This document shows positions 2,000-61,756 of a stretch of DNA of 64,000 bases, one piece after another. The notes beneath the pieces were generated by a model. It ran no database searches. It saw only the letters and a program-made list of their open reading frames with translations, and was not told the DNA's origin. Source of the DNA: Dendrobates tinctorius (lineage: Eukaryota); the NCBI RefSeq assembly GCF_039654945.1, contig NW_027361869.1, positions 8,060,001 to 8,124,000 on the forward strand, given 5' to 3'. The first letter of the stretch is position 1. Each line of letters starts with the position of its first letter. Made by a program: the position numbers and the translations under genes.

Positions 2000-2132
2000 G
2001 ATGTGCTCCAAATGTACAGGGAGTAGATGTATATAAATGTCTTACCTGTCTCCTGCCCTGTCTAACTGCCATGCTATAACTGACAGTAGTACTTTGATGC
2101 ATGTACTTCGATTACATGTGCATAAATGCCAC
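2000..2132 (-). mobile_element. 5' end of the L2 element belonging to the upstream histone unit
   Basis: Near-identical to 50827-50959 (offset 48827). Confidence 0.85.
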
Positions 2133-3657
2133 CACTGATCATACAACTCTGCGGGGACAGGGTGGTGGTACTGATAATACAGCTCTGCAGGGAGGAGGTG
2201 GTGGTGCTGAACATACAGCTCTGCAGGGAAAAGGTGGTGGCACTGAACATACAGCTCAGCGTGGACAAGGTGGTGGTACTAATCAGACAGCTCTACAGGG
2301 AGGAGGTGGTGGCACTGAACATACTTGTTTGCAGTGATGAGGTAGTGGCACTGATCATACAGCTCTGCAGGGATGAGGTGGTGGCACTGAAGATACAGCT
2401 CTGCAGTGATGAGGTGGTTGCACTGATCATACAGCTCTGTGGGGAGGAGGCGGTGGCACTGATCATAAGGCTCTGCAGGGACAAGGTTGTGTCACTGATC
2501 TTACAGCTCTGTAGGGATGAGGTGGTGGCACTGATCATACAGTTCTGCGGGGAGGAAGTGGTGGCACTGATCATACAGCTCTTCAGGGAGGAGGTGGTGG
2601 CACTGATCATACAGCTCTTCAGGAATGAGGTAGTGGCACAGATCATACAGCTCTGCAGAGAGGAGGTGGTGGCACTGATTATACAGCTTTGCAGGGATGA
2701 GGTAGTGGCACAGATCCTACAGACCTGCAGGGACAAGGTGGTGGCACTGATCATACAGCTCTGCATTGACAAGGTGGTGACACTGATCATACACCTCTGC
2801 GGCGATAAGGTGGTGGTACTGATCATACAGCTCTGCAAGGACCAGGTGGTGGCACTGATCATACAGCTTTGCGGGGACAATGTGTTTGCACTGATTATAC
2901 ATCTCTTAAGGTATAAGTTGGAGGCACTGATCACACAGGTCTGCAGGGAAAAGGTGGTGTTATTGAACATACAGCTCAGCGCGGACAAGGTGGTGGCACT
3001 GATCAGACAGCTCTACAGGGAGGAGGTTGTGGCACTAAACATACTGGTTTGCAGGGATGAGGTTGTGGCACTGATCATACAGCTCTGCAGGGAGGAGGTG
3101 GTGGCACTGATCATACAGCTCTGCAGGGAATAGGTGGTGGCACTGATCGTACAGCTCTGCTGGGACAAGATGGTGGTACTGATCATAAAGCTCTGCAGGG
3201 ATGATGTAGTGGCACTGATCATACAGGTCTGCAGAGACGAGGTGGTGGCACTGATCATACAACTTTTCGTGGACAAGGTGGTGGCACTGATCAGACAGCT
3301 TTGCGTGTACAAGGTGGTGGCACTAATCAGGTAGCCCTGAGGGGATGACGTGGTGGCACTGATCAAAAAGCTCTGCAGGGATTAGGTGGTGGCACTGATC
3401 ATACAGCTCTGCAAGGAGTAGGCGGTGGCACTGATCATACAGCTTGCGTTGACAATGTGGTGGCACTGATTATACAGTTCTGCGGCGAAAAGGTGGTGGC
3501 ACTGATCATACAGCTCTGCATGTAAAGGTGGTGGCACTGAACATACAGGTCTGCAGGGAAAAGGTGGTGGCACTGAACATACAGGTCAGCAGGGACGAGG
3601 TGGTGGCACTCATTATAGAACTCTGCAGGGGTGAAGTGGTGGCACTGATCATACAGG
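2133..3657. repeat. 36-bp satellite array (~42 monomers), consensus GGTGGTGGCACTGATCATACAGCTCTGCAGGGAGGA
   Basis: Clear 36-nt periodicity. Confidence 0.97.
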
Positions 3658-4752: not shown

Positions 4753-5840
<1,088 letters not shown>

Positions 5841-5874
5841 TCTGCTCAGTCTGCTGCTCCGCCATCACCCCAAA

Positions 5875-5913
5875 GGCTCTTCTAAGCCACCACCCCATCT
5901 CCATCAGAGCTGT
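5875..5913 (+). terminator. H2B stem-loop with a 2-nt deletion (GGCTCTTCTAAGCC) and HDE CAGAGCTGT
   Basis: The paralogous copy at 61741-61756 reads GGCTCTTCTAAGAGCC. Confidence 0.85.
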
Positions 5914-7754: not shown

Positions 7755-8093
<339 letters not shown>

Positions 8094-11224: not shown

Positions 11225-11796
<572 letters not shown>

Positions 11797-12107: not shown

Positions 12108-12578
12108 GGCACCGATCATACAGCTCTGCGGGGAGGAGGTGGAGGCACTGATCATACAGCTCTGCGGGGAGGAGGTGGAGGCACTGATCATACAGCTCTG
12201 CGGGGACAGGGTGGTGGCACTGATCATACAGCTCTGCGGGGAGGAGGTGGAGGCACTGATCATACAGCTCTGCGGGGAGGAGGTGGAGGCACTGATCATA
12301 CAGCTCTGCGGGGACAGGGTGGTGGCACTGATCATACAGCTCTACGAGGACAGGGTGGTGGCTCAGATCATACAGCTCTGCGGGGACAGGGTGGTGGCAC
12401 TGATCATACAGCTCTGCGGGGACAGGGTGGTGGCACCGATCATACAGCTCTGCGGGGACAGGGTGGTGGCACTGATCATACAGCTCTACGAGGACAGGGT
12501 GGTGGCACCGATCATACAGCTCTGCGGGGACAGGGTGGTGGCACCGATCATACAGCTCTGCGGGGACAGGGTGGTGGC
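12108..12578. repeat. Homogeneous 13-copy 36-bp array fused to the H1 stem-loop
   Basis: 13 units; the last unit GGGTGGTGGC continues directly into TCTGAAAAGAGCC. Confidence 0.97.
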
Positions 12579-12591
12579 TCTGAAAAGAGCC
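12576..12591 (-). terminator. H1 histone stem-loop; its cleavage site and HDE form the first satellite monomer
   Basis: Reverse complement ACAAA GGCTCTTTTCAGAGCC ACCAC CCTGTCCCCG CAGAGCTGTA. Confidence 0.95.
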
Positions 12592-12618
12592 TTTGTGTAA
12601 AAGAACTGGGTCCGCAAC

Positions 12619-13236
12619 TTATTTCTTGGCCGCGGGCTTCTTGGCTTTCTTAGCCGGACTCTTGGCAGCTTTAGGTTTGGCCGCCTTTTTAGCCGGACTC
12701 TTCGTCGCCTTCTTAGGCTTGGGAGCGGCTTTCGACTTCTTGGGGCTCTTGGCCGCTTTCTTGGCAGCTGCGGGCTTCTTGGCCTTTTTCGGGCTCTTCT
12801 TGGCCGTGGTCAGAGCCTTCTTGGGCTTCTTCGGAGATTTGGCGGCTTTCTTAGCAGCAACGGGTTTCTTGGGCTTGGCTGCTGACTTCTTGGCCACTTT
12901 AGTCTCCTGCTTCTTGTTGAGTTTGAAGGACCCGGAGGCGCCGCTGCCCTTCACCTGGAGGAGGGTGCCCTTGGTGACCAGAGACCTGACGGCCAGCTTC
13001 AGGCGGCTGTTGTTCTTCTCTACATCGTACCCTCCGGCAGACAGCGCCTTCTTCAGGGCGGCCAGAGACACCCCACTGCGCTCCTTAGAGGCTGACACGG
13101 CTTTCACGATCAGCTCGGAGACGCCAGGACCGGAGGATTTCTTGCTGCTCTTGGCGGCGGATTTCTTTGGCTGCTTCTTGGACTTGGCAGCCGGTTCTGC
13201 GGGAGGGGGAGCGGCGGCTGGCGCGGTCTCTGCCAT
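12619..13236 (-). CDS. H1: Linker histone H1 (somatic), 205 aa
   Basis: Globular domain [26 protein letters not shown]...[13 protein letters not shown]-rich tail with SPKK motifs. Confidence 0.99.
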
Positions 13237-17170: not shown

Positions 17171-17422
17171 TGATGATATTGGAGACTGCGGACAGACAGT
17201 CACTGGCGTTCTGTATTACAGAGGGGTAAGGTCAGGGGAAGACGTATACAGTTGTGTGTCATCAGCATAAAGATGGTACCGAAAGCCAAATTTGCTGATG
17301 GTCTGTCCAATTGGGGCTGTATAGAGAGAGAAGAGATGGGGGCCAAGGACTGAGCCCTGAGGTACCCAGACAGCAAGAGGAAGAGGAAATGAAGTGGAGC
17401 CAGAGAACAAAACACTGAAGAA
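17171..17422 (-). mobile_element. L2 RT core fragment, copy 1
   Basis: [16 protein letters not shown]...[11 protein letters not shown]. Confidence 0.85.
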
Positions 17423-17621
17423 CTCTGCAGGGACGAGGTGGTGGCACCGATCATACAGGTCAGCAGGGACGAGGTGGTGGCACTCATTATAGAACTCTGC
17501 AGGGATGAAGTGGTGGCACTGATCATACAGCTCTGCGGGGGAGGAGGAGGTGGCACTGATCATACAGGCCAAAAATGGGGGACGGGGTATAGCATGCAGA
17601 TGGAGAGCACATTGATGCTGG

Positions 17622-17764
17622 AAAGAGCCTTTGTGTTGCAGTCAGGTGAGCAGGACAGATCTAAGCTCTCTCCCCACGGATCCAGCGGGCTAGCTGGATA
17701 TCTTTGGGCATGATGGTGACCCTCTTAGCGTGGATCGCGCACAGATTTGTGTCCTCAAACAGCC
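17622..17764 (-). pseudogene. H3: H3 3' fragment, copy 1 (33 codons, 3'UTR, half stem-loop)
   Basis: Matches 11186-11328; [33 protein letters not shown]. Confidence 0.93.
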
Positions 17765-20700
17765 AAGATGGTGGACTGATCATACAGCTCTGTAGTGACG
17801 AGGTGGTGGCACTGATCATGCAGTTCTGCAGGGATGAGGTTGTGGCACTGATCATACAGCTCGGCAGGGATGAGGTAGTGGCACAGATCATACAGCTCTG
17901 CAGGGAGGAGAGGAGGTAGTGGCACAGATCATACAGCCCTGCAGGGATGAGGTGGTGGCACTGATCATACACCTCTGCGGCGACAAGGTGGTGGCACGGA
18001 TCCTACAGCTCTGCGAGGACCAGGTGGTGGCACTGATCGTAAAGCTCTGCAGAGGTGGTGGTGGCACTGATTAGACAGCTTTGCAGGGAGTAGGTGGTGG
18101 CACTGATCATACAGCTCTGCGGGGACAAAGTGGTGGCACTTATGTTACAGCTTTGCGGGGAAAAGGTTGTGGCACTGATCATACAGCTCTGCAGGGAGGA
18201 GTTGGTGGCACTGATCATACAGCTCTGTGCTGACCAACTGGTGGCACTGATCATGCAACTTTGCGGTGACAAGGTGATGGCACTGATTATACAGTTCTGC
18301 GGTGACAAGGTGCTGGCACTGTTCATACAGGTCTGAAGGGAAAAGGAGGTGACACTGAACATACAGCTCAGCGCGGACAAGGTGGTGGCACTGATCAGAC
18401 AGCTCTACAGGGAGGAGGTGGTGGCACTGATCATACAGCTCTGTGCTGACCAACTGGTGGCACTGATCATGCAACTTTGCGGTGACAAGGTGATGGCACT
18501 GATTATACAGTTCTGCGGTGACAAGGTGGTGGCACTGATCAAACAGCTCTGCAGGGATTAGGTGGTGGCACTGATCATACAGCTCTGTGCTGACCAACTG
18601 GTGGCACTGATCATGCAACTTTGCGGTGACAAGGTGATGGCACTGATTATACAGTTCTGCGGTGACAAGGTGGTGGCACTGATCATACAGGTCTGCAGGG
18701 AAAAGGTGGTGGCACTGAACATACAGCTCAGCACGGACAAGGTGGTGGCACTGATCAGACAGCTCTACAGGGAGGAGGTTTTGGCACTGAACATCCTGGT
18801 TTGCAGGGATAAGGTAGTGGCTCTGATCATACAGCTCTGCAGGTATGAGGTGGTGGCACTGAAGATTCAGCTCTGCAGGGATGAGGTGGTTGCAATGATC
18901 ATACAGCTCTGTGGGGACAAGGTTGTGTCACTGATCTTACAGATCGGCAGGGAGTATGTGGTGGCATTGATCATTCAGCTCTGTGTGGATAAGATGGTGG
19001 CACTGATAATGCAGCTCTGCAGGGAAGAGGTGGTGACACTGATCATACAGCTCTGCAAGGACGAGGTGTTGGCACTGATCATACAGCTTTGCGGGGACAA
19101 TGTGGTTGCACTGATTATACATCTCTTTAGGGATAAGTTGGAGGCACTGATCATGCAGTTATGCAGGGATGAGGTTGTGGCACTGATCATACAGCTCTGA
19201 AGGGATGAGGTAGTGGCACAGATCACACAGCTCTGCAGGGATGAGGATGTGGCACTGATCATACAGCTCTGCGGGGACAAGGTGGTGACACTGATAATAT
19301 ACCTCTGCGGCGACAAGGTGGTGGTACTGATCATACAGCTCTGCAGAGAGGAGGTGGTGGCACTGATCATACAGCTCTGAAGGGAATAGGTGGTGGCACT
19401 GATCATAAAGTTCTGCAGTGACGAGTTGGTGGCACTAATCATACTGCTTTGCAGGGAGGAGGTGGTGGCACTGATCATACAGCTTTGCGTGGACAAGGTG
19501 GTGGCACTGATCATATAGCTCTGAGGGGATGACGTGGTGGACTGATCAAATAGCTCTGCAGGGATTAGGTGGTGGCAATGATCATACAGCTCTGCAAGGA
19601 GTAGGCGGTGGCACTGATCTTACAGCTCTGTGCTGACCAACTGGTGGCACTGATCATACAACTTTGTGGTGACAAGGTGGTGGCACTGATTATACAGTTC
19701 TGCGGCTACAAGGTGGTGGCACTGATCATACAGCTCTGCAGTGACGAGGTTGTGGCAATGATCATGCAGTTCTGCAGGGATGATTCAGTAGCACAGATCA
19801 TACAGCCCTGCAGGGATGAAAGGGTGGCACTGATCATAGAGCTCTGCAGGGAAAAGTTGGTGACACTGATCATACACCTTTGTGGCGACAAGGTGATGGT
19901 ACTGATCATACAGCTCTGCAAGGACCAGGTGGTGGCACTGATCATAAAGCTCTGCAGGGATGAGGTGGTGGCACTGATCATACAGCTCTGCAGAGAGGAG
20001 GTGGCGGCACTGATCATACACCTCTGCAGCAACAAGGTGGTGGTACTGATCATACAGCTCTGCGGGGACAAGATGGTGGCACTGATCATAAAGCTCTGCA
20101 GGGATGATGTGGTGGCACTGATCATACAGGTCTGCAGGGATGAGATAGTGGCTCAGATCATACAGCTCTACAGGGACGAGGAGGTGGCACTGATCATACA
20201 CCTCTGCGGGGACAAGGTGGTGACACTGATTATACACGTCTGTGGCGACAAGGTGCTGGTACTGATCATACAGCTCTGCAGGGAGGAGGTGGTGGCACTG
20301 ATCATACAGCTCTGAAGGGAATAGGTGGTGGCACTGATCATAAAGTTCTGCAGTGACGAGGTGGTGGCACTAATCATACTGCTTTGCAGGGAGGAGGTGG
20401 TGGCACAGATCATACAGCTCTGCAGAGAGGAGGTGGTGGCACTGATTATACAGCTTTGCAGGGAGGAGATGGTGGCACTGATCATACAGCTCTGCAGGGA
20501 GTAGGTGGTGGCACTGATCATACAGCTCTCCCGGGACAATTTGATGGCACTGATCATACAGCTCTGCTCGGACAAAGTGTTGGCACTTATGATACAGCTT
20601 TGTGGGGACAAGGTGGTGGCACTGATCATACAGCTCTGCAGTGACGAGGTCGTGGCACTGATCATGCAGTTCTGCAGGGATGATTCAGTAGCACAGATCA

Positions 20701-21328: not shown

Positions 21329-21499
21329 AAAAATAACTCAAAGATGGATGGGAATGAGAAATCCCACAGGATAAAAAAGATGCTACATGAATGATAAAAA
21401 TAATAACAATGATAATAATAAATGGCACAATTTTTATTTTTTTAAATAAAGATGCCTTTATTAAAATATTGACACAACAATTAAGTGCATTAAAAAAAA

Positions 21500-21543
<44 letters not shown>

Positions 21544-21850
21544 GTATACAATCACATTAGCCAAAACCAATCCATATCAAAAAGGCTTAATTAATGAACC
21601 AGGTACAAAAATGCATATATATAGTGACACAAGGATAATTACATAAAAAGAAAATAAATTTATGTATAATGAATGTGCCCAAAGTGCAGAGGTGCAGCTG
21701 TGCAAAAAATTCAAATCGCACTAAGGCGTGTGCAACAAAACACAAAGTGTAAAATACCTGTAAGCCGATTGACTCTATGTGAGTTGTATAAGAACATGCC
21801 CCGACGGGCGTTTCGGAAATAAATCTCCTTCGTCAGGTGGATAGATACGC
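21329..21850 (-). mobile_element. AT-rich insertion with (TA)n and hammerhead-like core, Penelope-like/retrozyme relic, copy 1
   Basis: Flanked by the direct repeat CTGCAAGGA; minus strand has CTGACGA-stem-GAAAC..GTC. Confidence 0.6.
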
Positions 21851-24800
21851 CTGCAAGGAGTAGGCGGTGGCACTGATCATACAGCTCTGCGGGGACTAGG
21901 TGGTGGCACTGATCATACAGCTTTGCGGTGGCAATGTGGTGGCACTGATTATACAGTTCTGCGGCGACAAGGTGGTGACACGGATCATACAGCTCTGCAT
22001 GGAAAGGTGGTGGCACTGAACAAACAGCTCTGCAGGGAAAAGGTGGTGGCACTGATGAGACAGCTCTACAGGGAGGAGGTGGTGGCACTGAACATACTTG
22101 ATTGCCGGGAAGAGGTAGTGGCACTGATTATACAGCTCTGCAGGGATGAGGTGGCGGCACTGAAGATACAGGTCTGCAGGGATGAGTTGGTTGCACTGAT
22201 CGTAAGGATCTGCAGGGACAAGGTTGTGTCACTGATCTTAAAGCTCTGCAGGGATGAGTTGTCACTGTTCATACAGTTCTGCAGGGAGGAGGTGGTGGCA
22301 CTGATCATACAGCTCTGTGTGGATAAGATGGTGGCAATGATCATACAGCTCTGCAGGGAGGAGGTGGTGGCACTGATCATACAGCTCTGTGTGGATAAGA
22401 TGGTGGCAATGATCATACAGCTCTACAGGGAGGAGGTGGTGGCACTGAACATACTTGTTTACAGGGATGAGGTAGTGGCACTGATCATACAGCTCTGCAG
22501 GGATGAGGTGGTGGCACTGACGATACAGCTCTGCAGGGATGAGGTGGTTGCACTGATCATAAAGCACTTTGGGGAGGAGGCGGTGGCACTGATCATAAGG
22601 CTCTGCAGGGACAAGGTTGTGTCACTGATCTTACAGCTCTGCATGGATGAAGTGGTGGCACTGATCATACAGTTCTGCAGGGAGGAGGTGGTGGCACTGA
22701 TCATACAGCTCTTCAGGGAGGAGGTGGTGGCACTGATCACACAGCTCTGCAGGGAGTAGGTTGTGGCACTGATAATACAGCTCTGTGTGGCTAAGATGGT
22801 GGCACTGATCATACAGCTCTGCAGGGAGGAGTTGGTGGCACTGATCATACAGCTCTGCAGGGAAGAGGAGGTGACACTTATCATACAGATCTGCAAGGAT
22901 GAGGTGTTGGCACTGATCATACAGCTTTGCGGGGACAATGTGGTTGCACTGATCATACACCTCTGCGGTGACAAGGTGGTGGTACTGATCATACAGCTCT
23001 GCATGGAGAAGGTGGTGGCACTGATCATACAGTTCTGCAGTGACGATTTGGTGGCACTAATGGTACAGCTCTGCAGGGATGAGGTAGTGGCACAGATCAT
23101 ACAGCTCTGCGGGGACAATGTGGTGACACTGATCATAGAGCCCTGCAAGGGCCAGGTGGTGGCACTGATCATAAAGATCTGCAGGGAAGAGTTGGTGGCA
23201 CTGATCATACAGCTCTGCGGGGACAATGTGGTGACACTGATCATAGAGCCCTGCAAGGGCCAGGTGGTGGCACTGATCATAAAGATCTGCAGGGAAGAGT
23301 TGGTGGCACTGATCATACAGCTCTGCAGGGACGAGGTGTTGGCACTTATCATACAGCCTTGCGCAGACAAGGTGGTGGCACTGATCATACATCTTTACGG
23401 GGACAATGTGGTTATACTGATTATACATCTCTTTAGGGATAAGTTGGAGGCACTGATCATGTGGTTCTGCAAGGATGAGGTTGTGGCACTGATCATACAG
23501 CTCTGCAGAGAGGAGGTGGTGGCACTGATCATACAGCACTGTGTGGACAATTTGATAGCACTGATCATACATCTCTGCTCGGACAAAGTGGTGGCACTTA
23601 TGATACAGCTTTGCGGGGACAAGGTGGTGGCACTGATCTTATAGCTTTGCAAGGATGAGGTGGAGGTACTAATCATACTGCTCTGCAGTGAAGAGGTGGT
23701 GGCACTGATTATACAGCTCAGCGCGGACAAGGTGGTGGCACTGATCAGACAGCTCTACAGGAAGGAGGTGGTGGCACTGAAAATACTTGTTTGCCGGGAT
23801 GAGGTAGTGGCACTGATTATACAGCTCTGCAGGGGTGAGGTGGTGGCACTGAAGATACAGTTCTGCAAGGATGAGGTGGTTGCACTGATCATAAGTCTCT
23901 GCAGGGACAAGGTTGAGTCACTGATCTTAAAGCTCTGCAGGGATGAGGTGGTGGCACTGATCATACAGTTCTGCGGGGAGGAGGTGGTGGCATTGATCAT
24001 ACAGCTCTGCAGGGAGGAGGTGGTGGCACTGATCACACAGCTCTGCAGGGAGTAGGTGGTGGCACTGATCATACAGCTCTGTGTGGATAAGATGGTGGCA
24101 ATGATCTTGCAGCTCTGCAGGGAGGAGTTGGTGGCACTGATCATACAGCTCTGCAAGGATGAGGTGTTGGCACTGATCATACAGCTTTGCGGGGACAATG
24201 TGGTTGCACTGATTATATATCTCTTTAGGGATAAGTTGGAGGCACTGATCATGCGGTTCTGCAGGGATGAGGTTGTGGCACTGATCATACAGCTCTACGG
24301 GGACAAGGTGGTGGTACTGATCATACAGCTCTGCAGGGAGGAGGTGGTGGCGCTGTACATACAGCACTGCAGGGAAAGGTGGTGGCACTGAACATACAGC
24401 TCAGCGTGGACAAAGTGGTGGTACTGATCAGACAGCTCTACAGGGAGGAGTTGGTGGCACTGAACATACAGCACTGCAGGGAAAGGTGGTCGCACTGAAC
24501 ATACAGCTCAGCACGGACATAGTGGTGGTACTGATCAGACAGCTCTACAGGGAGGAGGTGGTGGCACTGAACATACTTGTTTGCAGGGATGAGGTAGTGT
24601 CACTGATCTTACAGCTCTGCAGGGATGAGGTGGTGGCACTGAAGATACAGCTCTGCAGGGATGAGGTGGTTGCACTGATCATACAGCACTGTGGTGAGGA
24701 GGCGGTGGCACTGACCATAAGGCTCTGCAGGGACAAGGTTGTGTCACAGATCTTACAGCTCTGCAGGGATGAGGTGGTGGCACTAATTATACAGTTCAGC

Positions 24801-28048: not shown

Positions 28049-28215
28049 AAAAATAACTCAAAGATGGATGGGAATGAGAAATCCCACAGGATAAAAAAGA
28101 TGCTACATGAATGATAAAAATAATAACAATGATAATAATAAATGGCACAATTTTTATTTTTTTAAATAAAGATGCCTTTATTAAAATATTGACACAACAA
28201 TTAAGTGCATTAAAA

Positions 28216-28262
<47 letters not shown>

Positions 28263-28588
28263 GTATACAATCACATTAGCCATGTGTTTATGGATAATGG
28301 AAAACCAATCCATATCAAAAATTCTTAATTAATGAACCAGGTACAAAAATGCATATATATAGTGACACAAGGATAATTACATAAAAAGAAAATAAATATA
28401 TGTATAATGAATGTGCCCAAAGTGCAGAGGTGCAGCTGTGCAAAAAATTCAAATCGCACTAAGGCGTGTGCAACAAAACACAAGGTGTAAAATACCTGTA
28501 AGCCGATTGACGCTACGTGAGTTGTATAAGAACATGCCCCCACGGGCGTTTCAGAAATAAATCTCCTTCGTCAGGTGGATAGATACGC
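28049..28588 (-). mobile_element. AT-rich hammerhead-like insertion, copy 2
   Basis: Near-identical to copy 1, same flanks. Confidence 0.6.
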
Positions 28589-29524
28589 CTGCAAGGAGTA
28601 GGCGGTGGCACTGATCATACAGCTCTGCGGGGACTAGGTGGTGGTAATGATCATACAGCTCTGTGCTGACCAACTGGTGGCACTGATCATACAGCTTTGC
28701 GGTGACAATGTGGTGGCACTGATTATACAGTTCGGCGGCGACAGGGTGGTGACACTGATCATACAGCTCTGCATGGAAAGGTGGTGGCACTGAACAAACA
28801 GCTCTGCAGGGAAAAGGTGGTGGCACTGAACATACAGCTCAGCGCGGACAGGGTGGTGGCACTGATCAGACAGCTCTACAGGGAGGAGGTGGTGACACTG
28901 AACATACTTGTTTGCCGGGATGAGGTAGTGGCACTGAACATACAGCTCAGCGAGGACAAGGAGGTGGTACTGATCAGACAGCTCTACAGGGAGGAGGTGG
29001 TGGCACTGAACATACTTGTTTACAGGGATGAGGTAGTAGCACTGAACATACAGCTCTGCAGGGATGAGGTGGTTGCACTGATCATACAGCTCTTTGGGAA
29101 GGAGGCGGTGGCACTGATCATAAGGCTCTGCAGGGACCAGGTTGTGTCACTGATCTTACAGCTCTGCATGGATGAGGTGGTGGCACTGATCATACAGTTC
29201 TGCAGGGAGGAGGTGGTGGCACTGATCATACAGCTTTGCGGGGACAATGTGGTTGCACTGATTATATATGTCTTTAGGGATAAGTTGGAGGCACTGATCA
29301 TGCGGTTCTGCAGGGATGAGGTTGTGGCACTGATCATACTGCTCTGCGGGGACAAGGTGGTGACACTGATCATACACCTCTGCGGCGACAAGGTGGTGGT
29401 ACTGATCATACAGCTCTGCAGGGAGGAGGTGGTGGCACTGATCACACAGCTCTGAAGGGAATAGGTGGTGGCACTGATCATACAGCTCTGCAGGGAATAG
29501 ATGGTGGCACTGATCATAGAGTTC

Positions 29525-29776
29525 TGATGATATTGGAGACTGCGGACAGACTGTCACTGGCGTTCTGTATTACAGAGGGGTAAGGTCGGGGGAAGACGTA
29601 TACAGTTGTGTGTCATCAGCATAAAGATGCTACCGAAAGCCAAATTTGCTGATGGTCTGTCCAATTGGGGCTGTATAGAGCAAGAAGAGATGGGGGCCAA
29701 GGACTGAGCCCTGAGGTACCCAGAAAGCAAGAGGAAGAGGAGATGAAGTGGAGCCAGCGAACAAAACACTGAAGAA
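29525..29776 (-). mobile_element. L2 RT core fragment, copy 2
   Basis: Paralog of 17171-17422. Confidence 0.85.
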
Positions 29777-29974
29777 CTCTGCAGAGACGAGGTGGTGGCA
29801 CCGATCATACAGGTCAGCAGGGACGAGGTGGTGGCACTCATTATAGAGCTCTGCAGGGATGAAGTGGTGGCACTGATCATACAGCTCTGCGGGGAGGAGG
29901 AGGTGGCACTGATCATACAGGCCAAAATTGGGGTACTGTGTATGGCATGCGGATGGAGAGCACATTGATGCTGG

Positions 29975-30133
<159 letters not shown>

Positions 30134-33710: not shown

Positions 33711-33962
33711 TGATGATATTGGAGACTGCGGGCAGACAGTCACTGGCGTTCTGTATTACAGAGGGGTAAGGTCGGGGGAAGACGTATACAGTTGTGTGTC
33801 ATCAGCATAAAGATGGTACCGAAAGCCAAATTTGCTGATGGTCTGTCCAATTGGGGCTGTATAGAGAGGGAAGAGATGGGGGCCAAGGACTGAGCCCTGA
33901 GGTACCCAGACAGCAAGAGGAAGAGGAGATGAAGTGGAGCCAGCGAACAAAACACTGAAGAA
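33711..33962 (-). mobile_element. L2 RT core fragment, copy 3
   Basis: YADD-containing paralog. Confidence 0.85.
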
Positions 33963-34201
33963 CTCTGCAGGGACGAGGTGGTGGCACCGATCATACAGGT
34001 CAGCAGGGACGAGGTGGTGGCACTCATTATAGAGCTCTGCCGGGATGAAGTGGGGGCACTGATCATACACCTCTGCAGCGACAAGGTGGTGGTACGGATC
34101 ATACAGCTCTGCGAGGACCAGGTGGTGGCACTGATCATAAAGCTCTGCAGAGAGGAGGTGGTGGCACTGATTAGACAGCTTTGTAGGGAGGAGATGTTGG
34201 C

Positions 34202-37391: not shown

Positions 37392-37564
37392 AAAAATAAC
37401 TCGAAGATGGATGGGAATGAGAAATCCCACAGGATAAAAAAGATGCTACATGAATGATAAAAATAATAACAATGATAATAATAAATGGCACAATTTTTAT
37501 TTTTTTAAATAAAGATGCCTTTATTAAAATATTGACACAACAATCAAGTGCATTAAAAAAAAAA

Positions 37565-37615
<51 letters not shown>

Positions 37616-37952
37616 TATATATTAGAGTATACAATCACATTAGCCATGTGTTTATGGATAATGGAAAACCAATCCATATCAAAAATTCTTAATTAATGAA
37701 CCAGGTACAAAAATGCATATATATAGTGACACAAGGATAATTACATAAAAAGAAAATAAATATATGTATAATGAATGTGCCCAAAGTGCAGAGGTGCAGC
37801 TGTGCAAAAAATTCAAATCGCACTAAGGCGTGTGCAACAAAACACAAAGTGTAAAATACCTGTAAGCCGATTGACGCTACGTGAGTTGTATAAGAACATG
37901 CCCCCACGGGCGTTTCGGAAATAAATCTCCTTCGTCAGGTGGATAGATACGC
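37392..37952 (-). mobile_element. AT-rich hammerhead-like insertion, copy 3
   Basis: Near-identical to copy 2. Confidence 0.6.
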
Positions 37953-39283
37953 CTGCAAGGAGTAGGCGGTGGCACTGATCATACAGCTCTGCGGGGACTA
38001 GGTGGTGGTAATGATCATACAGCTCTGTGCTGACCAACTGGTGGCACTGATCATACAGCTTTGCGGTGACAATGTGGTGGCACTGATTATACAGTTCGGC
38101 GGCGACAGGGTGGTGACACTGATCATACAGCTCTGCATGGAAAGGTGGTGGCACTGAACAAACAGCTCTGCAGGGAAAAGGTGGTGGCACTGAACATACA
38201 GCTCAGCGCGGACAAGGTGGTGGCACTGATCAGACAGCTCTACAGGGAGGAGGTGGTGGCACTGAACATACTTGTTTGCCGGGATGAGTTAGTGGCACTG
38301 ATTATACAGCTCTGCAGTGAGAGGTGGTGGCACTGAAGATACAGCTCTACAGGGATGAGGTGGTTGCACTGATCATAAGGATCTGCAGGGACAAGGTTGT
38401 GTCACTGATCTTAAAGCTCTGCAGGGATGAGGTGGTGGCACTGATCATACAGTTCTGCAGGGAGGAGGTGGTGGCACTGATCATACAGCTCTGTGTGGAT
38501 AAGATGGTGGCAATGATCATACAGCTCTGCAGGGAGGAGTTGGTGGCACTGATCATACAGCTCTGCAAGGATGAGGTGTTGACACTGATCATACAGCTTT
38601 GCGGGGACAATGTGGTTGCACTGATTATATATCTCTTTAGGGATAAGTTGGAGGCACTGATCATGCGGTTCTGCAGGGAAAAGGTTGTGGCACTGAACAT
38701 ACAGCTCAGCGAGGACAAGGAGGTGGTACTGATCAGACAGCTCTACAGGGAGGAGGTGGTGGCACTGAACATACTTGTTTACAGGGATGAGGTAGTAGCA
38801 CTGATCATACAGCTCTGCAGGGATGAGGTGGTTGCACTGATCATACAGCTCTTTGGGAAGGAGGCGGTGGCACTGATCATAAGGCTCTACAGGGACCAGG
38901 TTGTGTCACTGATCTTACAGCTCTGCATGGATGAGGTGGTGGCACTGATCATACAGTTCTGCAGGGAGGAGGTGGTGGCACTGATCATACAGCTTTGCGG
39001 GGACAATGTGGTTGCACTGATTATATATGTCTTTAGGGATAAGTTGGAGGCACTGATCATGCGGTTCTGCAGGGATGAGGTTGTGGCACTGATCATACTG
39101 CTCTGCGGGGACAAGGTGGTGACACTGATCATACACCTCTGCGGCGACAAGGTGGTGGTACTGATCATACAGCTCTGCAGGGAGGAGGTGGTGGCACTGA
39201 TCACACAGCTCTGAAGGGAATAGGTGGTGGCACTGATCATACAGCTCTGCAGGGAATAGATGGTGGCACTGATCATAGAGTTC

Positions 39284-39535
39284 TGATGATATTGGAGACT
39301 GCGTACAGACTGTCACTGGCGTTCTGTATTACAGAGGGGTAAGGTCGGGGGAAGACGTATACAGTTGTGTGTCATCAGCATAAAGATGGTACCGAAAGCC
39401 AAATTTGCTGATGGTCTGTCCAATTGGGGCTGTATAGAGCAAGAAGAGATGGGGGCCAAGGACTGAGCCCTGAGGTACCCAGAAAGCAAGAGGAAGAGGA
39501 GATGAAGTGGAGCCAGCGAACAAAACACTGAAGAA
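39284..39535 (-). mobile_element. L2 RT core fragment, copy 4
   Basis: YADD-containing paralog. Confidence 0.85.
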
Positions 39536-39733
39536 CTCTGCAGAGACGAGGTGGTGGCACCGATCATACAGGTCAGCAGGGACGAGGTGGTGGCACTCAT
39601 TATAGAGCTCTGCAGGGATGAAGTGGTGGCACTGATCATACAGCTCTGCGGGGAGGAGGAGGTGGCACTGATCATACAGGCCAAAATTGGGGTACTGGGT
39701 ATGGCATGCGGATGGAGAGCACATTGATGCTGG

Positions 39734-39892
<159 letters not shown>

Positions 39893-40216: not shown

Positions 40217-43200
40217 TGTTGTGAGTTCATTTTCCCCTTCACTACTGAGGCCCGATGAACTCCCTCTTCTGGTAAAGAAAGGTAGTGAGCCTGATTATCA
40301 AACACCTGAGCCTAATGATGATGACTGGCTGAGTGGAGTTACTGACTGGATATAAGGCCGCCGACGCCCTTCTGCCCTGCGGGTGATTTCTCTGTGGGAT
40401 CCTTGGAGACCAGTCTGAATTCCTGCTCTTCTAAAGCTAAGTTTTCTGCTCGGCTTTTTGCATTTGTGCTTTGACTTTGTTTTGCTTTGTTTTTCCGGAT
40501 TTCTGCCATTCCCTGCTGGGGTGAGCTGAATTCCTTTAGCTCTGTCCTCTGAAAATACCTTAGTGCTGATTTAGTTTTTGAAGCCTAGCTGCTTCAGGGT
40601 CTTTTTCCATATCAGCTTGTTGGCTTATGTCTTTGATATGGTTTTGGCAGATTGCAGACAGCAACCTTTCTTTCCTGTTCTGTTTAGTTAGCTTGAGCCC
40701 CATTGTTTGCTCAGCCTATCTTTCTATCTGTGTGAGTGTTTTTTCATCTTGCGTCACCGTCATTATATGTTGGGGGCTGCCTTTTACTTTGGGGTCTGCT
40801 CTGGGGCAGTTTAGATTTCCTTTTCTGTCTTTAGGCTATTTAGCTCTCCGGCTGTGATTGAGGGGTCTAGGGCACCGTAGGAACCCCCCACGGCTACTGC
40901 TAGTTGTGTTGATAGGTTCAGGGGTCTGCAGTCTGATAGTTGCCAACTTCTCTGGTTTTCTGGACGTAGCTTCTATTTTTGTGTCTGCCTCCTACGGTGA
41001 CTCAATCATAACAGAATCACCCGCCATACCGCAGATCCTAGGGTACTCAATAGCAGGAAAGAATTGTAAAAAAAAAAAAAAAAAGTGTGTATATTTTTTC
41101 CTCTATATCTCTGAGGCCGTAGGGGGATTTTTTTTTTTTCTCTCAATGGAGATAAAGCAATTGTCTGATCGTGTGGAGCAGCTCGCTGCGGAAGTGCGTG
41201 GAATTTCCGCCTACCTTGCTCATTCACATGCTGCTGAACCAAAGATTCCTACACCTGATGTATTTTTTGGGGATCGGTCTAAATTTTTGAATTTCAAAAA
41301 TAATTGTAAATTATTTTTTGCCTTGAAGCCTAACTCGTCAGGGAGCTCCGCGCAGCAGGTTAAAATTGTCATCTCTTTGCTGCGTGGCGATCCCCAGGAT
41401 TGGGCGTTTTCTTTGAAACCAGATGATCCTTTTCTGACTAATGTGAACGCATTTTTTCAAGCCTTGGGGTTGTTGTATGACAAACCTAATGCCATTGATC
41501 AGGCTGAAAAGACCCTGCTGGCATTGAACCAGGATCGAGATTCTGCAGAATTGTACTGTCAAAAATTCCGAAAATGGGCAGTACTTACTACCTGGAATGA
41601 TAATGTCTTGGCTGCTCTCTTTCGGAAGGGGTTGTCAGAAGCCGTAAAAGATACTATGGTGGGATTTCCTGTTCCCTCTGGTCTTGACGATTCTATGTCA
41701 TTAGCTATTCAGGTTGATCGGCGTTTGCGCGAACGCAAAACTGCACGAGAGGTGTTGCCACCTGTTGAACAAATGTCTGAACCTATGCAATGTGATAGAG
41801 TTTTGTCCAGAGAGCAGCGTCAGGAGTTCAGAAGGCGTAATAAGTTGTGTTTTTTTTCTGTGGAGATGCCTCGCATGTTATTTCTGTCTGCCCTAAACGA
41901 GAGAAACGCTTTGCACACACGTTTTCTGTTGGTAGTGTTCAACCTAAGTTTCTTCTGGCTATTACTCTGATCTGCTCCCTGTCCACATTTTCCGCCAAGG
42001 CTTTTGTGGATTCGGGAGCAGCCCTAAACCTAATGGACTTGGATTTTGCTAAACGTTGTGGATTTCCGATGACACCTCTGCAGACGCCTATCCCTTTGAG
42101 GGGGATTGATGCTACTCCTTTGGCTAAAAATAAACCTCAGTTTTGGACCCAGGTGGTAATGCGGGTCGCCCCAGACCATCAAGAAAATTGCAGATTTTTG
42201 GTGTTGCATAATCTGCATGATACTATTGTTCTGGGGTTTCCCTGGTTACAAATTCATAATCCAGTTTTGGATTGGAAATCTGTGTCTATGGTGAGTTGGG
42301 GTTGTCGGTGTGCCTTTAGTGAGGCTCCGGTGTTTTCCACCTCTCCTCAGTCGCATGATGTTCCTGATTATTTGGCGGACTTTTATGATGTATTTAGTGA
42401 GAATGAGTCTGCGTCTCTGCCTCCTCATAGGAGTTATGACTGTGCAATTGAACTGAGCCCGGGGTGTAAATTTCCCAAGGGTCGGCTCTTCAATTTATCT
42501 GTACCCGAGCATGAGGCTATGCGATCCTATATTAAGGAGGCGTTGGAGAAGGGTCATATTAGACCATCCTCGTCACCCTTAGGTGCCGGTTTTTTTTTGT
42601 AGCCAAAAAGGATGGATCATTAAGACCTTGTATTGATTATCGTGCCCTCAACAAAATTACTGTTAAATATCAGTATCCGTTACCCCTGATTTCTGATCTA
42701 TTCTCCAGAGTTAAAGGTGCTTGCTGGTTTACCAAGCTTGACCTCAGGGGGGCGTATAATCTTATTCGCATTAAGCATGGGGATGAATGGAAGACGGCGT
42801 TTAATACTCCGGAGGGACATTTTGAGTACCTGGTGATGCCTTTTGGGCTCACTAATGCCCCTTCTGTCTTCCAGTGCTTCATGAACGATATTTTCCGAGA
42901 TTTTGTCGATAAATTTTTGATTATCTATCTGGATGATATTTTGATCTTCTCCAAGGACTGGGATTCTCATGTGGAACATATTCGGACTGTGTTCCGGATC
43001 TTGAGGGAGAATTCCCTGTATGTCAAAGGATCTAAATGCCTTTTTGGAGTACAGAGGATTTCTTTTTTGGGATTTATTTTGTCCCCGTCAACTATTGAAA
43101 TGGACCCGGCCAAGGTACAGGCCATTTACGATTGGGTTCAGCCCACTTCATTGAAGGCCCTCCAGAAGTTTTTGGGTTTTGCTAATTTTTATCGGAAATT

Positions 43201-45998
43201 TATAGCAAAATTTTCTAGTATTGCCAAGCCATTGACTGATTTGACTAAGAAGGGTGCTGATGTGTTAAATTGGTCTCCGGAGGCTGTTTCTTCCTTTCAG
43301 GAGCTGAAGCGAAGATTCACCTCCGCCCCGGTTTTGCGGCAACCTGATGTCTCACTTCCGTTCCAGGTAGAGGTGGATGCTTCTGAGATTGGTGCAGGAG
43401 CTGTTTTGTCCCAAAAGGATCCTGTAACATCTAAAATTAATCCCTGTGCTTTCTTTTCCCGAAAGTTCTCTCCATCTGAACGTAACTATGATGTGGGGAA
43501 TCGGGAACTGTTGGCCATGAAAGGGGCATTTGAGGAGTGGAGACATTGGTTGGAGGGAGCTAAGCATCAAGTCGTGGTCCTCACTGACCACAAGAATTTG
43601 ATTTACCTAGAGTCGGCTAAGCGCTTGAGCCCTAGACAGGCTAGGTGGGCTTTGTTTTTTTACACGTTTTGATTTTGTGGTTTCTTTTCTTCCTGGAACT
43701 AAGAATGTCAAGGCAGACGCCCTCTCTAGGAGCTTCTTTGCTGATTCTCCTGTGGTGACCAAGCCTGCTACCATCTTAGGCGAAGGGGTAGTTCTTTCTG
43801 CCATCTTGCCCGATTTGAGACGTGCTCTGGAAGAGTTCCAGGAGGACAAACCTGAGCGTTGTCCCAGTGGAAAGTTGTATGTTCCTGACCAGTGGAAGAA
43901 GAGAGTGATGTCTGAAGTTCATTGCTCTGCTTTGGCTGGTCATCCAGGTATTTTTTTTACTAGACATCTGGTGAGTCGATCTTTTTGGTGGCCCTCCTTG
44001 TCTCGTGATGTCAGGAATTTTGTGCAGTCCTGTGGGACGTGCTCCCGGTCTAAATCGTGTTCTCGCTCTAGTGGGTTGTTGATGCCTTTGCCTGTCCCCA
44101 AGAGGCCATGGACCCATATTTCAATGGATTTCATCTCTGATATGCCTGTCTCTCAAAGGATGACTGTTATTTGGGTGATTTGTGATAGGTTCTCTAAGAT
44201 GGTTCATCTTGTACCACTCCCTAAGTTGCCGTCTTCCTCTGAGTTGGTGCCCCTGTTTTTGCAACAGGTGGTTCGCTTGCAAGGGATTCCTGAGAACATT
44301 GTATCTGACAGAGGAGTTCAGTTTGTGTCTAGATTTTGGAGAACTTTCTGTTCCAAGCTGGGAATTCAGTTGTCCTTCTCCACTGCTTTTCACCATCAGA
44401 CCAATGGGCAGACAGAGAGAACAAACCAGACCTTTGAGTCATATTTGAGATGTTTTATTTCTGCTGATCAGGATGATTGGGTTTCATTTTTGCCCTTGGC
44501 CAAATTTGCTTTAAATAATGGAGCTAGTTCTGCCACTTTGATGTCACCTTTTTTTGTAACTTTGGGTTTCATCCTCGATTTTCTTCAGGGCAGGTGGAGC
44601 CCTCTGCCTGCCCAGGTGTTGACACTGTGGTGGAGAGAATGCACCAGATCTGGGACCAAGTGGTGGATAAGTTATCTCTCTCCCAGGAAAAGGCCCAGCG
44701 GTTTTCCAACCGACATAGGACCATTGGTCCCCAGTTTAAGGTTGGTGATATGGTGTGGTTATCATCAAAAAATATTGCTATGAAGGTGGCTCCTCCTAAG
44801 TTTAAGCCTAGATTTATTGGACCTTACAAGATTTTGGAGATTATTAATCCGTTCTCTTTTCGTTTGGCTCTTCCTGTCACATTTAAAATCCATAATGTGT
44901 TCCATAAATCTTTGTTGAAGAGGTTTGTTGAACCTGTTGTTCCGGGGGTGGCACCTCCAGACCCTGTATTGGTTGAAGGTAACATGGAATATGAGGTAGA
45001 GAAAGTACTGGATTCCCGTCTGGCTAGACGGAGACTCCAGTATTTGGTTAAGTGGAAGGGTTATGGTCAGGAGGATAATTCCTGGGTCTCTGCCTCTGAT
45101 ATTCATGCCAAAAGATTGGTGCGTGCCTTTCATCGGTCTCACCCGGATCGCCCTGGTGGCATGGATGAGGGTTCGGTGACCCCTCCTCAAGGGGGAGGTA
45201 CTGTTGTGAGTTCATTTTCCCCTTCACTACTGAGGCCCGATGAACTCCCTCTTCTGGTAAAGAAAGGTAGTGAGCCTGATTATCAAGCACCTGAGCCTAA
45301 TGATGATGACTGGCTGAGTGGAGTTACTGACTGGATATAAGGCCGCCGACGCCCTTCTGCCCTGCGGGTGAATTCTCTGTGGGATCCTTGGAGACCAGTC
45401 TGAATTCCTGCTCTTCTAAAGCTAAGTTTTCTGCTCGGCTTTTTGCATTTGTGCTTTGACTTTGTTTTGCTTTGTTTTTCTGGATTTCTGCCATTCCCTG
45501 CTGGGGTGAGCTGAATTCCTTTAGCTCTGTCTTCTGAAAATAACTGAGTGCTGATTTAGTTTTTGAAGCCTAGCTGCTTCAGGGTCTTTTTCCATATCAG
45601 CTTGTTGGCTTATGTCTTTGATAGGGTTTTGGCAGATTGCAGACAGCAACCTTTCTTTCCTGTTCTGTTTAGTTAGCTTGGGCCCCATCGTTTGCTCAGC
45701 CTATATTTCTATCTGTGTGAGTGTTTTTTCATCTTGCTTCAGCGTCATTATATGTTGGGGGCTGCCTTTTACTTTGGGGTCTGCTCTGGGGCAGTTTAGA
45801 TTTCCTTTTCTGTCTTTAGCCTAATTAGCTCTCCGGCTGTGATCGAGGGGTCTAGGGCACCGTAGGAATCCCCCACGGCTACTGCTAGTTGTGTTGATAG
45901 GTTCAGGGGTATTCAATCTGAGAGTTGCCAACTTCTCTTTTTTTCTGGACGTAGCTTCTATTTTTGTGTCTGCCTCCTACGGTGACTCAATCATACCA
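40217..45998 (+). mobile_element. Full-length Ty3/Gypsy chromovirus (Tf1/sushi-like) LTR retrotransposon
   Basis: 797-bp LTRs at 40217-41013 and 45202-45998, flanking GTTGGC repeat, PPT AAGGGGGAGGTAC, domain order gag-PR-RT-RH-IN-chromo. Confidence 0.96.
41146..45200 (+). pseudogene. Frameshifted gag-pol
   Basis: CCHC knuckle CFFCGDASHVISVC, protease VDSGA, RT YLDD, RNase H DAS, integrase GHPG/SDRG/TER, chromodomain YEVEKVLDSR..YLVKWKGY. Confidence 0.93.
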
Positions 45999-47257
45999 GT
46001 TGGCACTGATCATACAGCTCTGCAGGGAGTAGGTGGTGGCACTGATCATACAGCTCTGCGGGGACAAAGTGGTGGCACTTATGTTACAGCTTTGCGGGGA
46101 CAAGGTGGTGGCACTGATCATACAGCTCTGCAGGGAGGAGTTGGTGGCACTGAACATACAGCTCAGCGTGGACAAAGTGGTGGCACTGATCTTAAAGCTC
46201 TACAAGGATGAGGTGGTGGTACTAATCATACAGCTCTGCAGGGAGGAGGTGGTGGCACTGATCATACAGCTCTGCGGGGACAAGATGGAGGCACTGATGA
46301 TAAGGCTCTGCAGGGATGATGTGGTGGCACTGATCGTACAGGTCTGCAGGGATGAGGTGGTAGCACTCATCATACAGCTTTGCGTGGACAAGGTGGTGGC
46401 ACTGATCATATAGCTCTGAGGGGATGACGTGGTGGCACTGATCAAATAGCTCTGCAGGGATTAGGTGGTGGCACTGATCATACAGCTCTGCAAGGAGTAG
46501 GCGGTGGCACTGATTCAACAGCTGTGCGAGGAGTAGGCAGTGGTACTGATCATACAGCTCTGTGCTGACCAACTGGTGGCACTGTTCATGCGGTGACAAG
46601 GTGGTAGCACTGATTATACAGTTCTGCGGCGACAAGGTGGGGGCACTGATCATACATGTCTGCAGGGAAAAGGTGGTGGCACTGAACATACAGATCAGCG
46701 CGGACAAGGTGGTGGCACTGATCAGACAGCTCTACAGGGAGGAGGTTGTGGCACTAAACTGGTTTGCAGGGATGAGGTAGTGGCACTGATTATACAGCTC
46801 TGCAGTGAGAGGTGGTGGCACTGAAGATACAGCTGTGCAGGGATGAGGTGGTTGCACTGATCATACAGCTCTGCAGGGAGTAGGCGGTGGCACTGATCAT
46901 ACAGCTCTGCGGGGACTTGGTGGTGGTACTGATCATACAGCTCTGTGCTGACCAACTGGTGGCACTGATCATACAACTTTGTGGTGACAAGGTGGTGGCA
47001 CTGATTATACAGTTCTGCGGCTACAAGGTGGTGGCACTGATCATACAGGTCTGCAGGGATGAGTTGGTGGCACTGATCATGTAGCCCTGAGGGGATGACG
47101 TGGTGGCACTGATCAAATAGCTCTGCAGGGATTAGGTGGTGGCACTGATCTTACAGCTTTGCGGGGACAATGTGATGGCACTGATTATATATCTCTTTAG
47201 GGATAAGTTGGAGGCACTGATCATGCGGTTCTGCAGGGATGAGGTTGTGGCACTGAT

Positions 47258-50200: not shown

Positions 50201-50959
50201 TACTTGAGGGATAACCTGAAAGGTACATTTTGGTGATAGGAGCAGACCAACGCCTCCACCTGCTCTACTGTCTGATCTTGGGGTATGAGAGAAGTGTAGC
50301 CCCCCGTATGAAAGAGCAGCAGCAGCGGTAGTGTCTGACTGCTGGATCCAGGTTTCAGTAAGAGCCAGAAGGTTAAGAGAATTAGAAAGGAAGAAGTCAT
50401 GGATGAAGGAGAGTTTGTTACAAACTAAGCGAGAATTCCAAAGTGCACAATTAAGAGAGACAGATGGCATGCAGGGAATATTAATAAGATTAGAGGGGTT
50501 TCTAAGTGTAGCAGTTGGGGGGTTTGACTTTCTATAACATGGGGGACCAAGGTTGGGAGCAATGTCTCCTGCGACTAGGAGAAGGAGGATAGAAAGAGTG
50601 AGCAGATTGTTAAGTGATTTGTGAGAGCGTCTCTGATGTTGAATGGTGGGACTGACTGGATCTGTGCAATTTAACAATGTGAAAAGAGCGTGAGTGCTAT
50701 ACATAGGAGAGGAAAGGAGCGAGGGGCCGATATGGATGGAGTGTAGAGAGTTAATGCAAGGGCGGTGGATGTGTGTGAATGCAGCGGCCAGGATATAAAT
50801 TATACAAATGCTTATGGTATATATTTGATGTGCTCCAAATGTACAGGGAGTAGATGTATATAAATGTCTTACCTGTCTCCTGCCCTGTCTAACTGCCATG
50901 CTATAACTGACAGTAGTACTTTGATTCATGTACTTCGATTACATGTGCATAAATGCCAC
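47258..50959 (-). mobile_element. L2-clade LINE (ORF2 endonuclease and RT, disrupted) with (TTA)n tail
   Basis: CALWN..LTETW..GGGVG..YRPP..GDFN..SDHN; [26 protein letters not shown]; tail at about 47258-47279; probable TSD CACTGAT (47251, 50960). Confidence 0.9.
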
Positions 50960-60618: not shown

Positions 60619-61706
<1,088 letters not shown>

Positions 61707-61740: not shown

Positions 61741-61756
61741 GGCTCTTCTAAGAGCC
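61741..61756 (+). terminator. H2B stem-loop, unit 2 (intact)
   Basis: CCAAA GGCTCTTCTAAGAGCC ACCAC, then HDE CAGAGCTGT. Confidence 0.95.

Follow-up and report, generated by a model that had tools for sequence, protein, structure and literature searches.

The histone repeat and its satellite

The window analysed here, 64,000 nucleotides of Dendrobates tinctorius DNA, spans one full histone gene repeat unit of about 56 kb and the start of a second, with second copies of H2A, H2B and H4 from position 60619 onward (Table 1). The H1 gene is intact, and its closest proteins are dendrobatid H1s at 91-94% identity (Ranitomeya variabilis, 94%; Phyllobates terribilis, 91%). Its exact protein is encoded on assembly GCA_039654945.1, which serves as the D. 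tinctorius reference in a preprint (10.1101/2025.06.11.659201); for this accession, the species table of PMC12822217 appears misaligned. A 3' untranslated region (3'UTR) of 27 nt leads from the stop codon to the canonical stem-loop, which fits the consensus exactly and which the Rfam Histone3 model (RF00032) places at 12550-12596 with a score of 35.9 bits (gathering score, 34). Three histone stem-loops in the window exceed that gathering score; they lie behind H4, H3 and H1. In the first H2B copy, the stem-loop is damaged (5873-5886, GGCTCTTCTAAGCC), its 3' arm being two bases short; the stem-loop of the second copy (61741-61756) is intact at 16 nt and has the same flank as the first.

Table 1. 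Histone genes, processing elements and satellite blocks in the window
Feature	Position	Strand	Basis or remark
H2A	4753-5157	minus	ORF list
H2B	about 5460-5840	plus	central part masked (N)
H4	7782-8093	plus	ORF list
H3 gene and stem-loop	11178-11635	minus	CDS 11225-11635, stem-loop 11178-11193; next gene downstream of the H1-proximal array
Units 2-13 of the H1-proximal array	12108-12539	minus	TRF and minus-strand reading
First 36-nt unit, putatively the gene's own processing signal	12540-12575	minus	homologous to the single-copy outgroup H1 flank
H1 stem-loop GGCTCTTTTCAGAGCC (SLBP site)	12576-12591	minus	exact pattern match and Rfam RF00032
H1 CDS	12619-13236	minus	intact ORF, 205 aa, stop codon 12619-12621
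Bulk satellite downstream of H2A	2131-3640	minus	last unit, 2131-2166, is of CTG type
Bulk satellite upstream of H1	14166-40213	minus	interrupted; same orientation as the H1 array
Bulk satellite between retroelements	46002-47248	minus	
Bulk satellite downstream of the next unit's H2A	50958-59503	minus	terminal unit, 50958-50993, is of CTG type

The DNA that follows the H1 stem-loop is organized as 13 ungapped 36-nt units, which run on the minus strand from 12575 to exactly 12108 in register with the stem-loop. TRF gives the array a period of 36, 13.2 copies and 93% matches, and so bears out the preliminary description, which had read the 36 nt after the stem as a 13-fold in-register repeat. 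The unit is laid out as ACCACC, a pyrimidine-rich spacer, GCAGAGCTGTATGATC and then (A/G)GTGCC; AGAGCTGTATGATC is present in 13 of 13 units. Two unit types make up the array, nine of the 13 units beginning ACCACCCTG and four beginning TCCACCTCC. Among units 2-13, those of CTG type occupy 12288-12539 and 12180-12215, and those of TCC type 12216-12287 and 12108-12179. Eight positions vary among the 13 units, all of them outside positions 17-30 (P = 0.011); the invariance of that stretch could reflect constraint on the extra HDEs (histone downstream elements), or descent from a few recent founders. Some 470 nt of unique spacer, the H3 promoter included, separate the array from H3.

The same 36-bp unit recurs far outside this array: 927 units were located in the window, all on one strand, and about 900 of them belong to the bulk arrays. 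The arrays reported by TRF comprise 13 to 695 copies, arranged head to tail in one orientation and with variant subfamilies, as befits a satellite. The word AGAGCTGTA occurs 357 times in the window, on the minus strand only, against 0.99 occurrences expected. A protein search with an ORF encoded by the satellite, made to learn its taxonomic spread, gave no match.

The largest bulk block, upstream of H1, is broken by 3' fragments of H3, by a fragment of non-LTR reverse transcriptase and by AT-rich insertions. The H3 pieces contain C-terminal coding sequence together with half a stem-loop (17590-17770, 29940-30125 and about 39700-39885); they are fused to sequence that also borders the arrays on their upstream side at 3640 and 59503, and have been copied with the satellite. 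The reverse transcriptase fragment, about 250 bp long (...YADDTQLY...), is found four times (17190-17440, 29545-29795, 33730-33980 and 39305-39555), and its recurrence within the satellite points to large-scale duplication of array segments. The AT-rich insertion appears in the bulk array three times with identical borders (21340-21870, 28060-28600 and 37400-37970). Between satellite blocks lie, in addition, an LTR-type gag-pol element on the plus strand (40858-45340) and a LINE-like ORF of 484 aa on the minus strand (47622-50929).

The unit as a 3'-processing signal

The first unit carries the elements of a histone 3'-processing signal in their proper order: the stem-loop lies upstream, ACCACC follows at 12570-12575 (with the cleavage region, ACCAC, at 12571-12575), then come a spacer rich in pyrimidines and, at a set distance (12551-12559), the HDE core AGAGCTGTA, followed by TGATCGGTGCC. 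The core occupies +17 to +25 relative to the stem and is the 9-nt complement of UACAGCUCU in the human and mouse U7 RNAs, the sequences of which are printed in PMC7026596. Read on the plus strand, the satellite therefore displays TACAGCTCT, a stretch identical to part of human and mouse U7 (PMC7026596); the statement of the preliminary description that this strand reproduces U7, with 9 complementary bases, holds against the mammalian sequences.

The neighbouring genes have the same element at much the same place. Each of the five histone classes present in the window has a core AGAGC that starts between +17 and +20 after the stem: H1 reads AGAGCTGTA, H2B AGAGCTGTG, H2A AGAGCTGA, H3 AGAGCG and H4 AGAGGCTA. 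The shared core complements ACAGCUCU, which the U7 RNAs of human and mouse carry in their 5' end. Mammalian U7 and this core common to five classes are the basis on which we infer that the first unit is used by the U7 snRNP of D. tinctorius. Rfam finds no U7 gene in the 64-kb window. The calculated duplex between unit and U7 amounts to −14.0 kcal/mol for the sense unit and −14.5 for an antisense dimer; it beats shuffled sequences (fraction 0.004-0.009), but because the antisense dimer scores equally well, duplex energy is set aside as a test. The H2B block downstream of the second copy's stem-loop (61757-61785, ACCACCCCATCTCCATCAGAGCTGTG) closely resembles the H1 block (12547-12575) up to the HDE, a likeness that suggests either shared constraint or exchange between the signals of the two genes.

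Spacing allows a prediction of the cleavage site. In the mouse H2a substrate, GAG lies at +20 to +22, and cleavage follows a ruler mechanism (PMC7026596). The GAG of the H1 core lies at +18 to +20, 2 nt nearer the stem than in mouse H2a; under the same ruler, cleavage would thus be expected near +3/+4. Two contigs from run X17, which stems from the same species, cover the H1 3'UTR with its stem-loop and stop at 12573, that is, at +3. The depth of this run is RNA-like, about 1000 in the H1 3'UTR and 29 a short way before the expected start. As its library type is unrecorded and these are contigs and not reads, their ends are consistent with the end of the H1 mRNA and do not prove it. A further X17 contig (depth 18.8) joins 12568, in the first unit, to 13212, at the start of the H1 coding region, and leaves out the 643 nt between; a chimera or an unusual copy may account for it.

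Layout in other dendrobatids

Short tandem repeats are often mis-assembled, and one might ask whether the array is merely a repeat collapsed or expanded by the assembler. Several observations speak against this. Independent runs of D. tinctorius contain 60-77% of the junction words, other histone units of the D. tinctorius genome have the same layout, and the junction recurs outside the species, in a contig of another species and in a gene model of Ranitomeya imitator. An artefact is accordingly so improbable that it hardly enters the account.

The R. imitator model (P0011, CAJ0937837.1) reads past the H1 stop through the stem-loop (KGSYKS), HH and unit-derived residues to PPPPPRRAV; its read-through corresponds to a first unit of TCC type and then a second unit in another frame. 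In a second model of this species, P0023, H1 is fused to the neighbouring H3. Both models are annotation artefacts of the locus structure seen here. The contig from the other species (run X24) matches 12538-12597 at all but 2 positions, and the 3'UTR into which it runs on from there is a different one. Within D. tinctorius, H1 and H3 lie exactly 72 nt closer together in another histone unit of assembly GCA_039654945.1, from which 11 units in place of 13 can be deduced. The junction in R. imitator and in the X24 contig, together with the difference between 11 and 13 units, indicates that the layout is common to dendrobatids and that copy number drifts.

Descent of the satellite from the H1 flank

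Direction of descent can be judged from frogs whose H1 loci lack the array. The H1 loci of outgroup species were read over 3.7-4.9 kb of DNA per species, and no 36-bp array was found within the stretches read. Each of three families has instead a single copy of the sequence, 36-38 nt long, directly after the H1 stem-loop. Leptodactylus fuscus (Leptodactylidae) matches the first unit at 31 of 36 positions, and over 3'UTR, stem-loop and unit together it agrees with the window at 84% over 100 nt (E = 7e-25). Rhinoderma darwinii (Rhinodermatidae) agrees at 94% over 53 nt (E = 2e-18), with likeness extending to the unit end (ATGATCACTGGCC against ATGATCAGTGCC). The homology in Mixophyes fleayi (Myobatrachidae) is looser but recognizable (flank ...CTCGGTCTCGACAGAGCTATATAG...). 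The HDE is kept in all three families. The flank of the distant outgroup Spea bombifrons is not homologous and has only a generic AAAGAG element. Two other sources were of no help here: the Eleutherodactylus coqui locus has a truncated H1 with no 3' end, and a Logan contig reached from a close H1 protein match encodes a fish-like H1 and is uninformative.

All 13 units match one and the same interval of the outgroup flank, where it is present once. Beyond about +38, homology is lost, between the window and the outgroups and between L. fuscus and R. darwinii alike. Homology thus ends at about the end of the monomer, and the unit coincides with the selected block downstream of the H1 stem-loop. 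Since the outgroup flanks are single-copy, in register and free of a 36-bp array, descent runs from gene flank to satellite. On these alignments, it is strongly supported that the monomer represents a conserved H1 processing block and that the satellite derives from the gene. Two proposals of the preliminary description stand on this footing: that the monomer is the H1 3'-processing signal, which agrees with the single-copy outgroup flank and with the common core at a common distance in five histone classes, and that the satellite arose from the H1 downstream element, which alignment of the monomer to array-free H1 loci supports through the homologous flanks of L. fuscus, R. darwinii and M. 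fleayi. An unrelated H1 flank in related species, raised in advance as part of a case against this descent, is not what these three families show; the one non-homologous flank is that of the distant outgroup Spea.

The opposite history would have the satellite predate its link with H1: recombination would have brought it to the stem-loop in place of the original HDE, leaving the outgroup flanks as its solitary remnants. A recombination substrate might be seen in the unit end, whose consensus TCAGTGCC matches the 3' side of the stem, TCAGAGCC, at 7 of 8 positions, a resemblance noted at the outset and confirmed here. Such a history would nevertheless have to leave exactly one copy in three outgroup families, in register and at the very position where any histone gene requires an HDE. 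That copy is, moreover, the sole conserved part of the intergenic DNA in the 3.7-4.9 kb read per outgroup, whose histone spacers hold unrelated tandem repeats; an older satellite is for these reasons very improbable. The data fit an origin of the unit's last 8 nt in the old flank and one in the 3' side of the stem equally well.

The outgroup spacer repeats deserve mention on their own account. Short tandem repeats lie upstream of H1 in R. darwinii (L005:1-988, 30 bp) and in L. fuscus (L002:4-339, about 29 bp); neither is related to the HDE unit. Among hyloid frogs, the presence of a satellite in the histone spacer may be a state that recurs.

Decay, turnover and the seed locus

The preliminary description took the homogeneous array behind H1 for the seed locus of the family. 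The variants say otherwise. At positions 7-9, bulk units read TTG (242), TCA (207), TCC (162) or TCG (60); at positions 13-16, they read CTGC (415), CCGC (134) or CCAC (36). This profile is that of two decaying CpGs, and leads back to a founding unit ...ACCACCTCGTCCCCGCAGAG.... Position 7 is T in the outgroups Leptodactylus and Rhinoderma, and Mixophyes reads TCG at 7-9, so that CTG, the prevailing form in the array next to H1, is a derived state. It is nearly confined to that array, the main exceptions being the two end units of bulk blocks listed in Table 1 and three scattered units. The older TCG/CCGC state has been retained in the bulk satellite, where it is now decaying at its CpGs; CCGC is kept by the H1-proximal array and lost in most bulk units. 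The homogeneity of the H1-proximal array is accordingly better explained by recent local amplification and replacement, including that of the unit used by the gene, than by antiquity. With a derived CTG variant next to H1, a first unit of TCC type in R. imitator and the older TCG in the bulk, the seed-locus claim is not sustained.

One way to bring these observations together, to which we assign a probability of roughly 85%, supposes that the H1 processing block was duplicated into a neutral, gene-derived satellite, of which the first unit is still the signal. The 36 nt 3' of the H1 stem-loop make up a conserved processing block, in which the cleavage region with its ACCA comes first, then a spacer, then the HDE for U7 binding, AGAGCUGUA, and last about 11 more nt. 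In a dendrobatid ancestor, head-to-tail copies of this block would have arisen, with slippage or unequal exchange as the probable mechanism, one that we infer; the ...GCC/ACC... that closes both stem and unit is a plausible microhomology for the event. The first unit would continue to work as the real signal of H1, presumably through the U7 snRNP, while units 2-13 would be duplicates under local turnover, so that copy number differs among histone repeat units. From there the unit would have spread into the spacers of the roughly 56-kb repeat as the 36-bp satellite, and the spread copies would decay as methylated, unconstrained DNA does.

Neutrality of the extra copies is the most likely state of affairs. 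Mean conservation in the bulk is 0.894 at positions 17-25, 0.923 at positions 26-36 and 0.868 at positions 1-6, and the 9-mer is intact in 38% of bulk units. The HDE core thus shows no higher conservation than the remainder of the bulk unit, as neutral decay predicts.

A second perspective gives the extra units a job. Tandem U7 sites might provide back-up cleavage or termination before the next promoter, or might concentrate U7 snRNP; in a variant of this idea, the satellite organizes a histone locus body or 'sphere', or acts as a U7 sponge. Sense RNA made of tandem HDEs, produced by read-through from H1 and H2A, would then bind U7 snRNP en masse, cleave or terminate as a fail-safe, and serve as a scaffold tethering the 'sphere' to the cluster; we regard this chain of events as doubtful. 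There is nonetheless something to be said for function. Every array is HDE-sense and lies downstream of H1 or H2A; the ACCA-to-HDE spacing of the real site is kept in each unit; the 13 proximal units share the invariant stretch described above; and the junction of stem-loop and unit is kept in at least three species. In human cells, U7 regulates repeats with U7-complementary motifs (PMC11417402). Satellite words are, further, very abundant in the RNA-like run X17, and in an RNA run from another species (X2) they are deeper than the H1 coding region, although carry-over of DNA is possible in both cases; RNA run X1 of D. tinctorius contains none of them. Against a function stand, besides that absence, the fact that bulk units have lost the HDE no more slowly than their other positions, the lack in units 2-13 of a stem-loop, which is normally needed for efficient processing, and the variation of array length among histone units, as neutral turnover expects. 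A functional role for the extra units is, on balance, unlikely, and duplication into a neutral satellite remains the preferred account.

Comparison with known systems

A full-text search of the literature found no description of a satellite derived from an HDE. The locus can nevertheless be set beside several systems that share one or another of its features. The nearest is the canonical histone 3' signal itself, in which a stem-loop with SLBP acts together with an HDE bound by the U7 snRNP. The frog sequence resembles it in its 16-nt stem-loop, its ACCA, its U7-complementary purine core and the usual distance between them; it differs in that the whole downstream block stands 13 times behind one stem-loop and recurs in hundreds of copies that have no gene.

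Histone clusters of the newt Notophthalmus viridescens are said, in work of Stephenson, Erba and Gall and of Diaz et al., both of 1981 and both among the references of PMC2114352, to be embedded in satellite DNA. Read-through from the newt histone genes reportedly yields satellite transcripts on lampbrush loops, and U7-rich spheres are said to be bound at these loci. In both amphibians, then, histone clusters are separated by tens of kb of tandem satellite. The newt unit, however, measures a few hundred bp and the frog unit 36 bp, and the frog case is known from its DNA arrays; we know of no derivation of the newt satellite from a histone processing signal. The 64 kb around the frog histone cluster offer potential U7 snRNP sites by the hundred. 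These sites bear on three questions: titration or recruitment of U7 by repeats of this kind, a contribution to termination of histone transcription, and the reason why amphibian histone loci have U7-rich nuclear bodies.

A parallel in mode of origin is the PcP190 satellite, which derives from 5S rDNA. Here too, a functional multicopy gene contains the segment to which the satellite monomer is homologous. The source in the dendrobatid frog differs, being a 36-nt cis-acting RNA-processing element and not an RNA gene, with the founder in place and presumably used. The birth of this satellite can be followed, base by base, back to a short cis-acting RNA-processing signal of which the founding copy is presumably still at work, and it offers a rare, clean example of how satellites start. 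PcP190 itself occurs in leptodactylid and hylodid frogs (PMC4201667).

Finally, the human LTR12 repeats contain HDE-like motifs that are bound by U7 snRNA and act on NF-Y-dependent transcription (PMC11417402). Both cases present repetitive DNA with motifs matching the 5' end of U7. LTR12 elements are dispersed retroviral LTRs, in which the motif is a matter of chance or co-option; in the frog, by contrast, a genuine HDE would have been amplified in tandem where the histone genes themselves lie.
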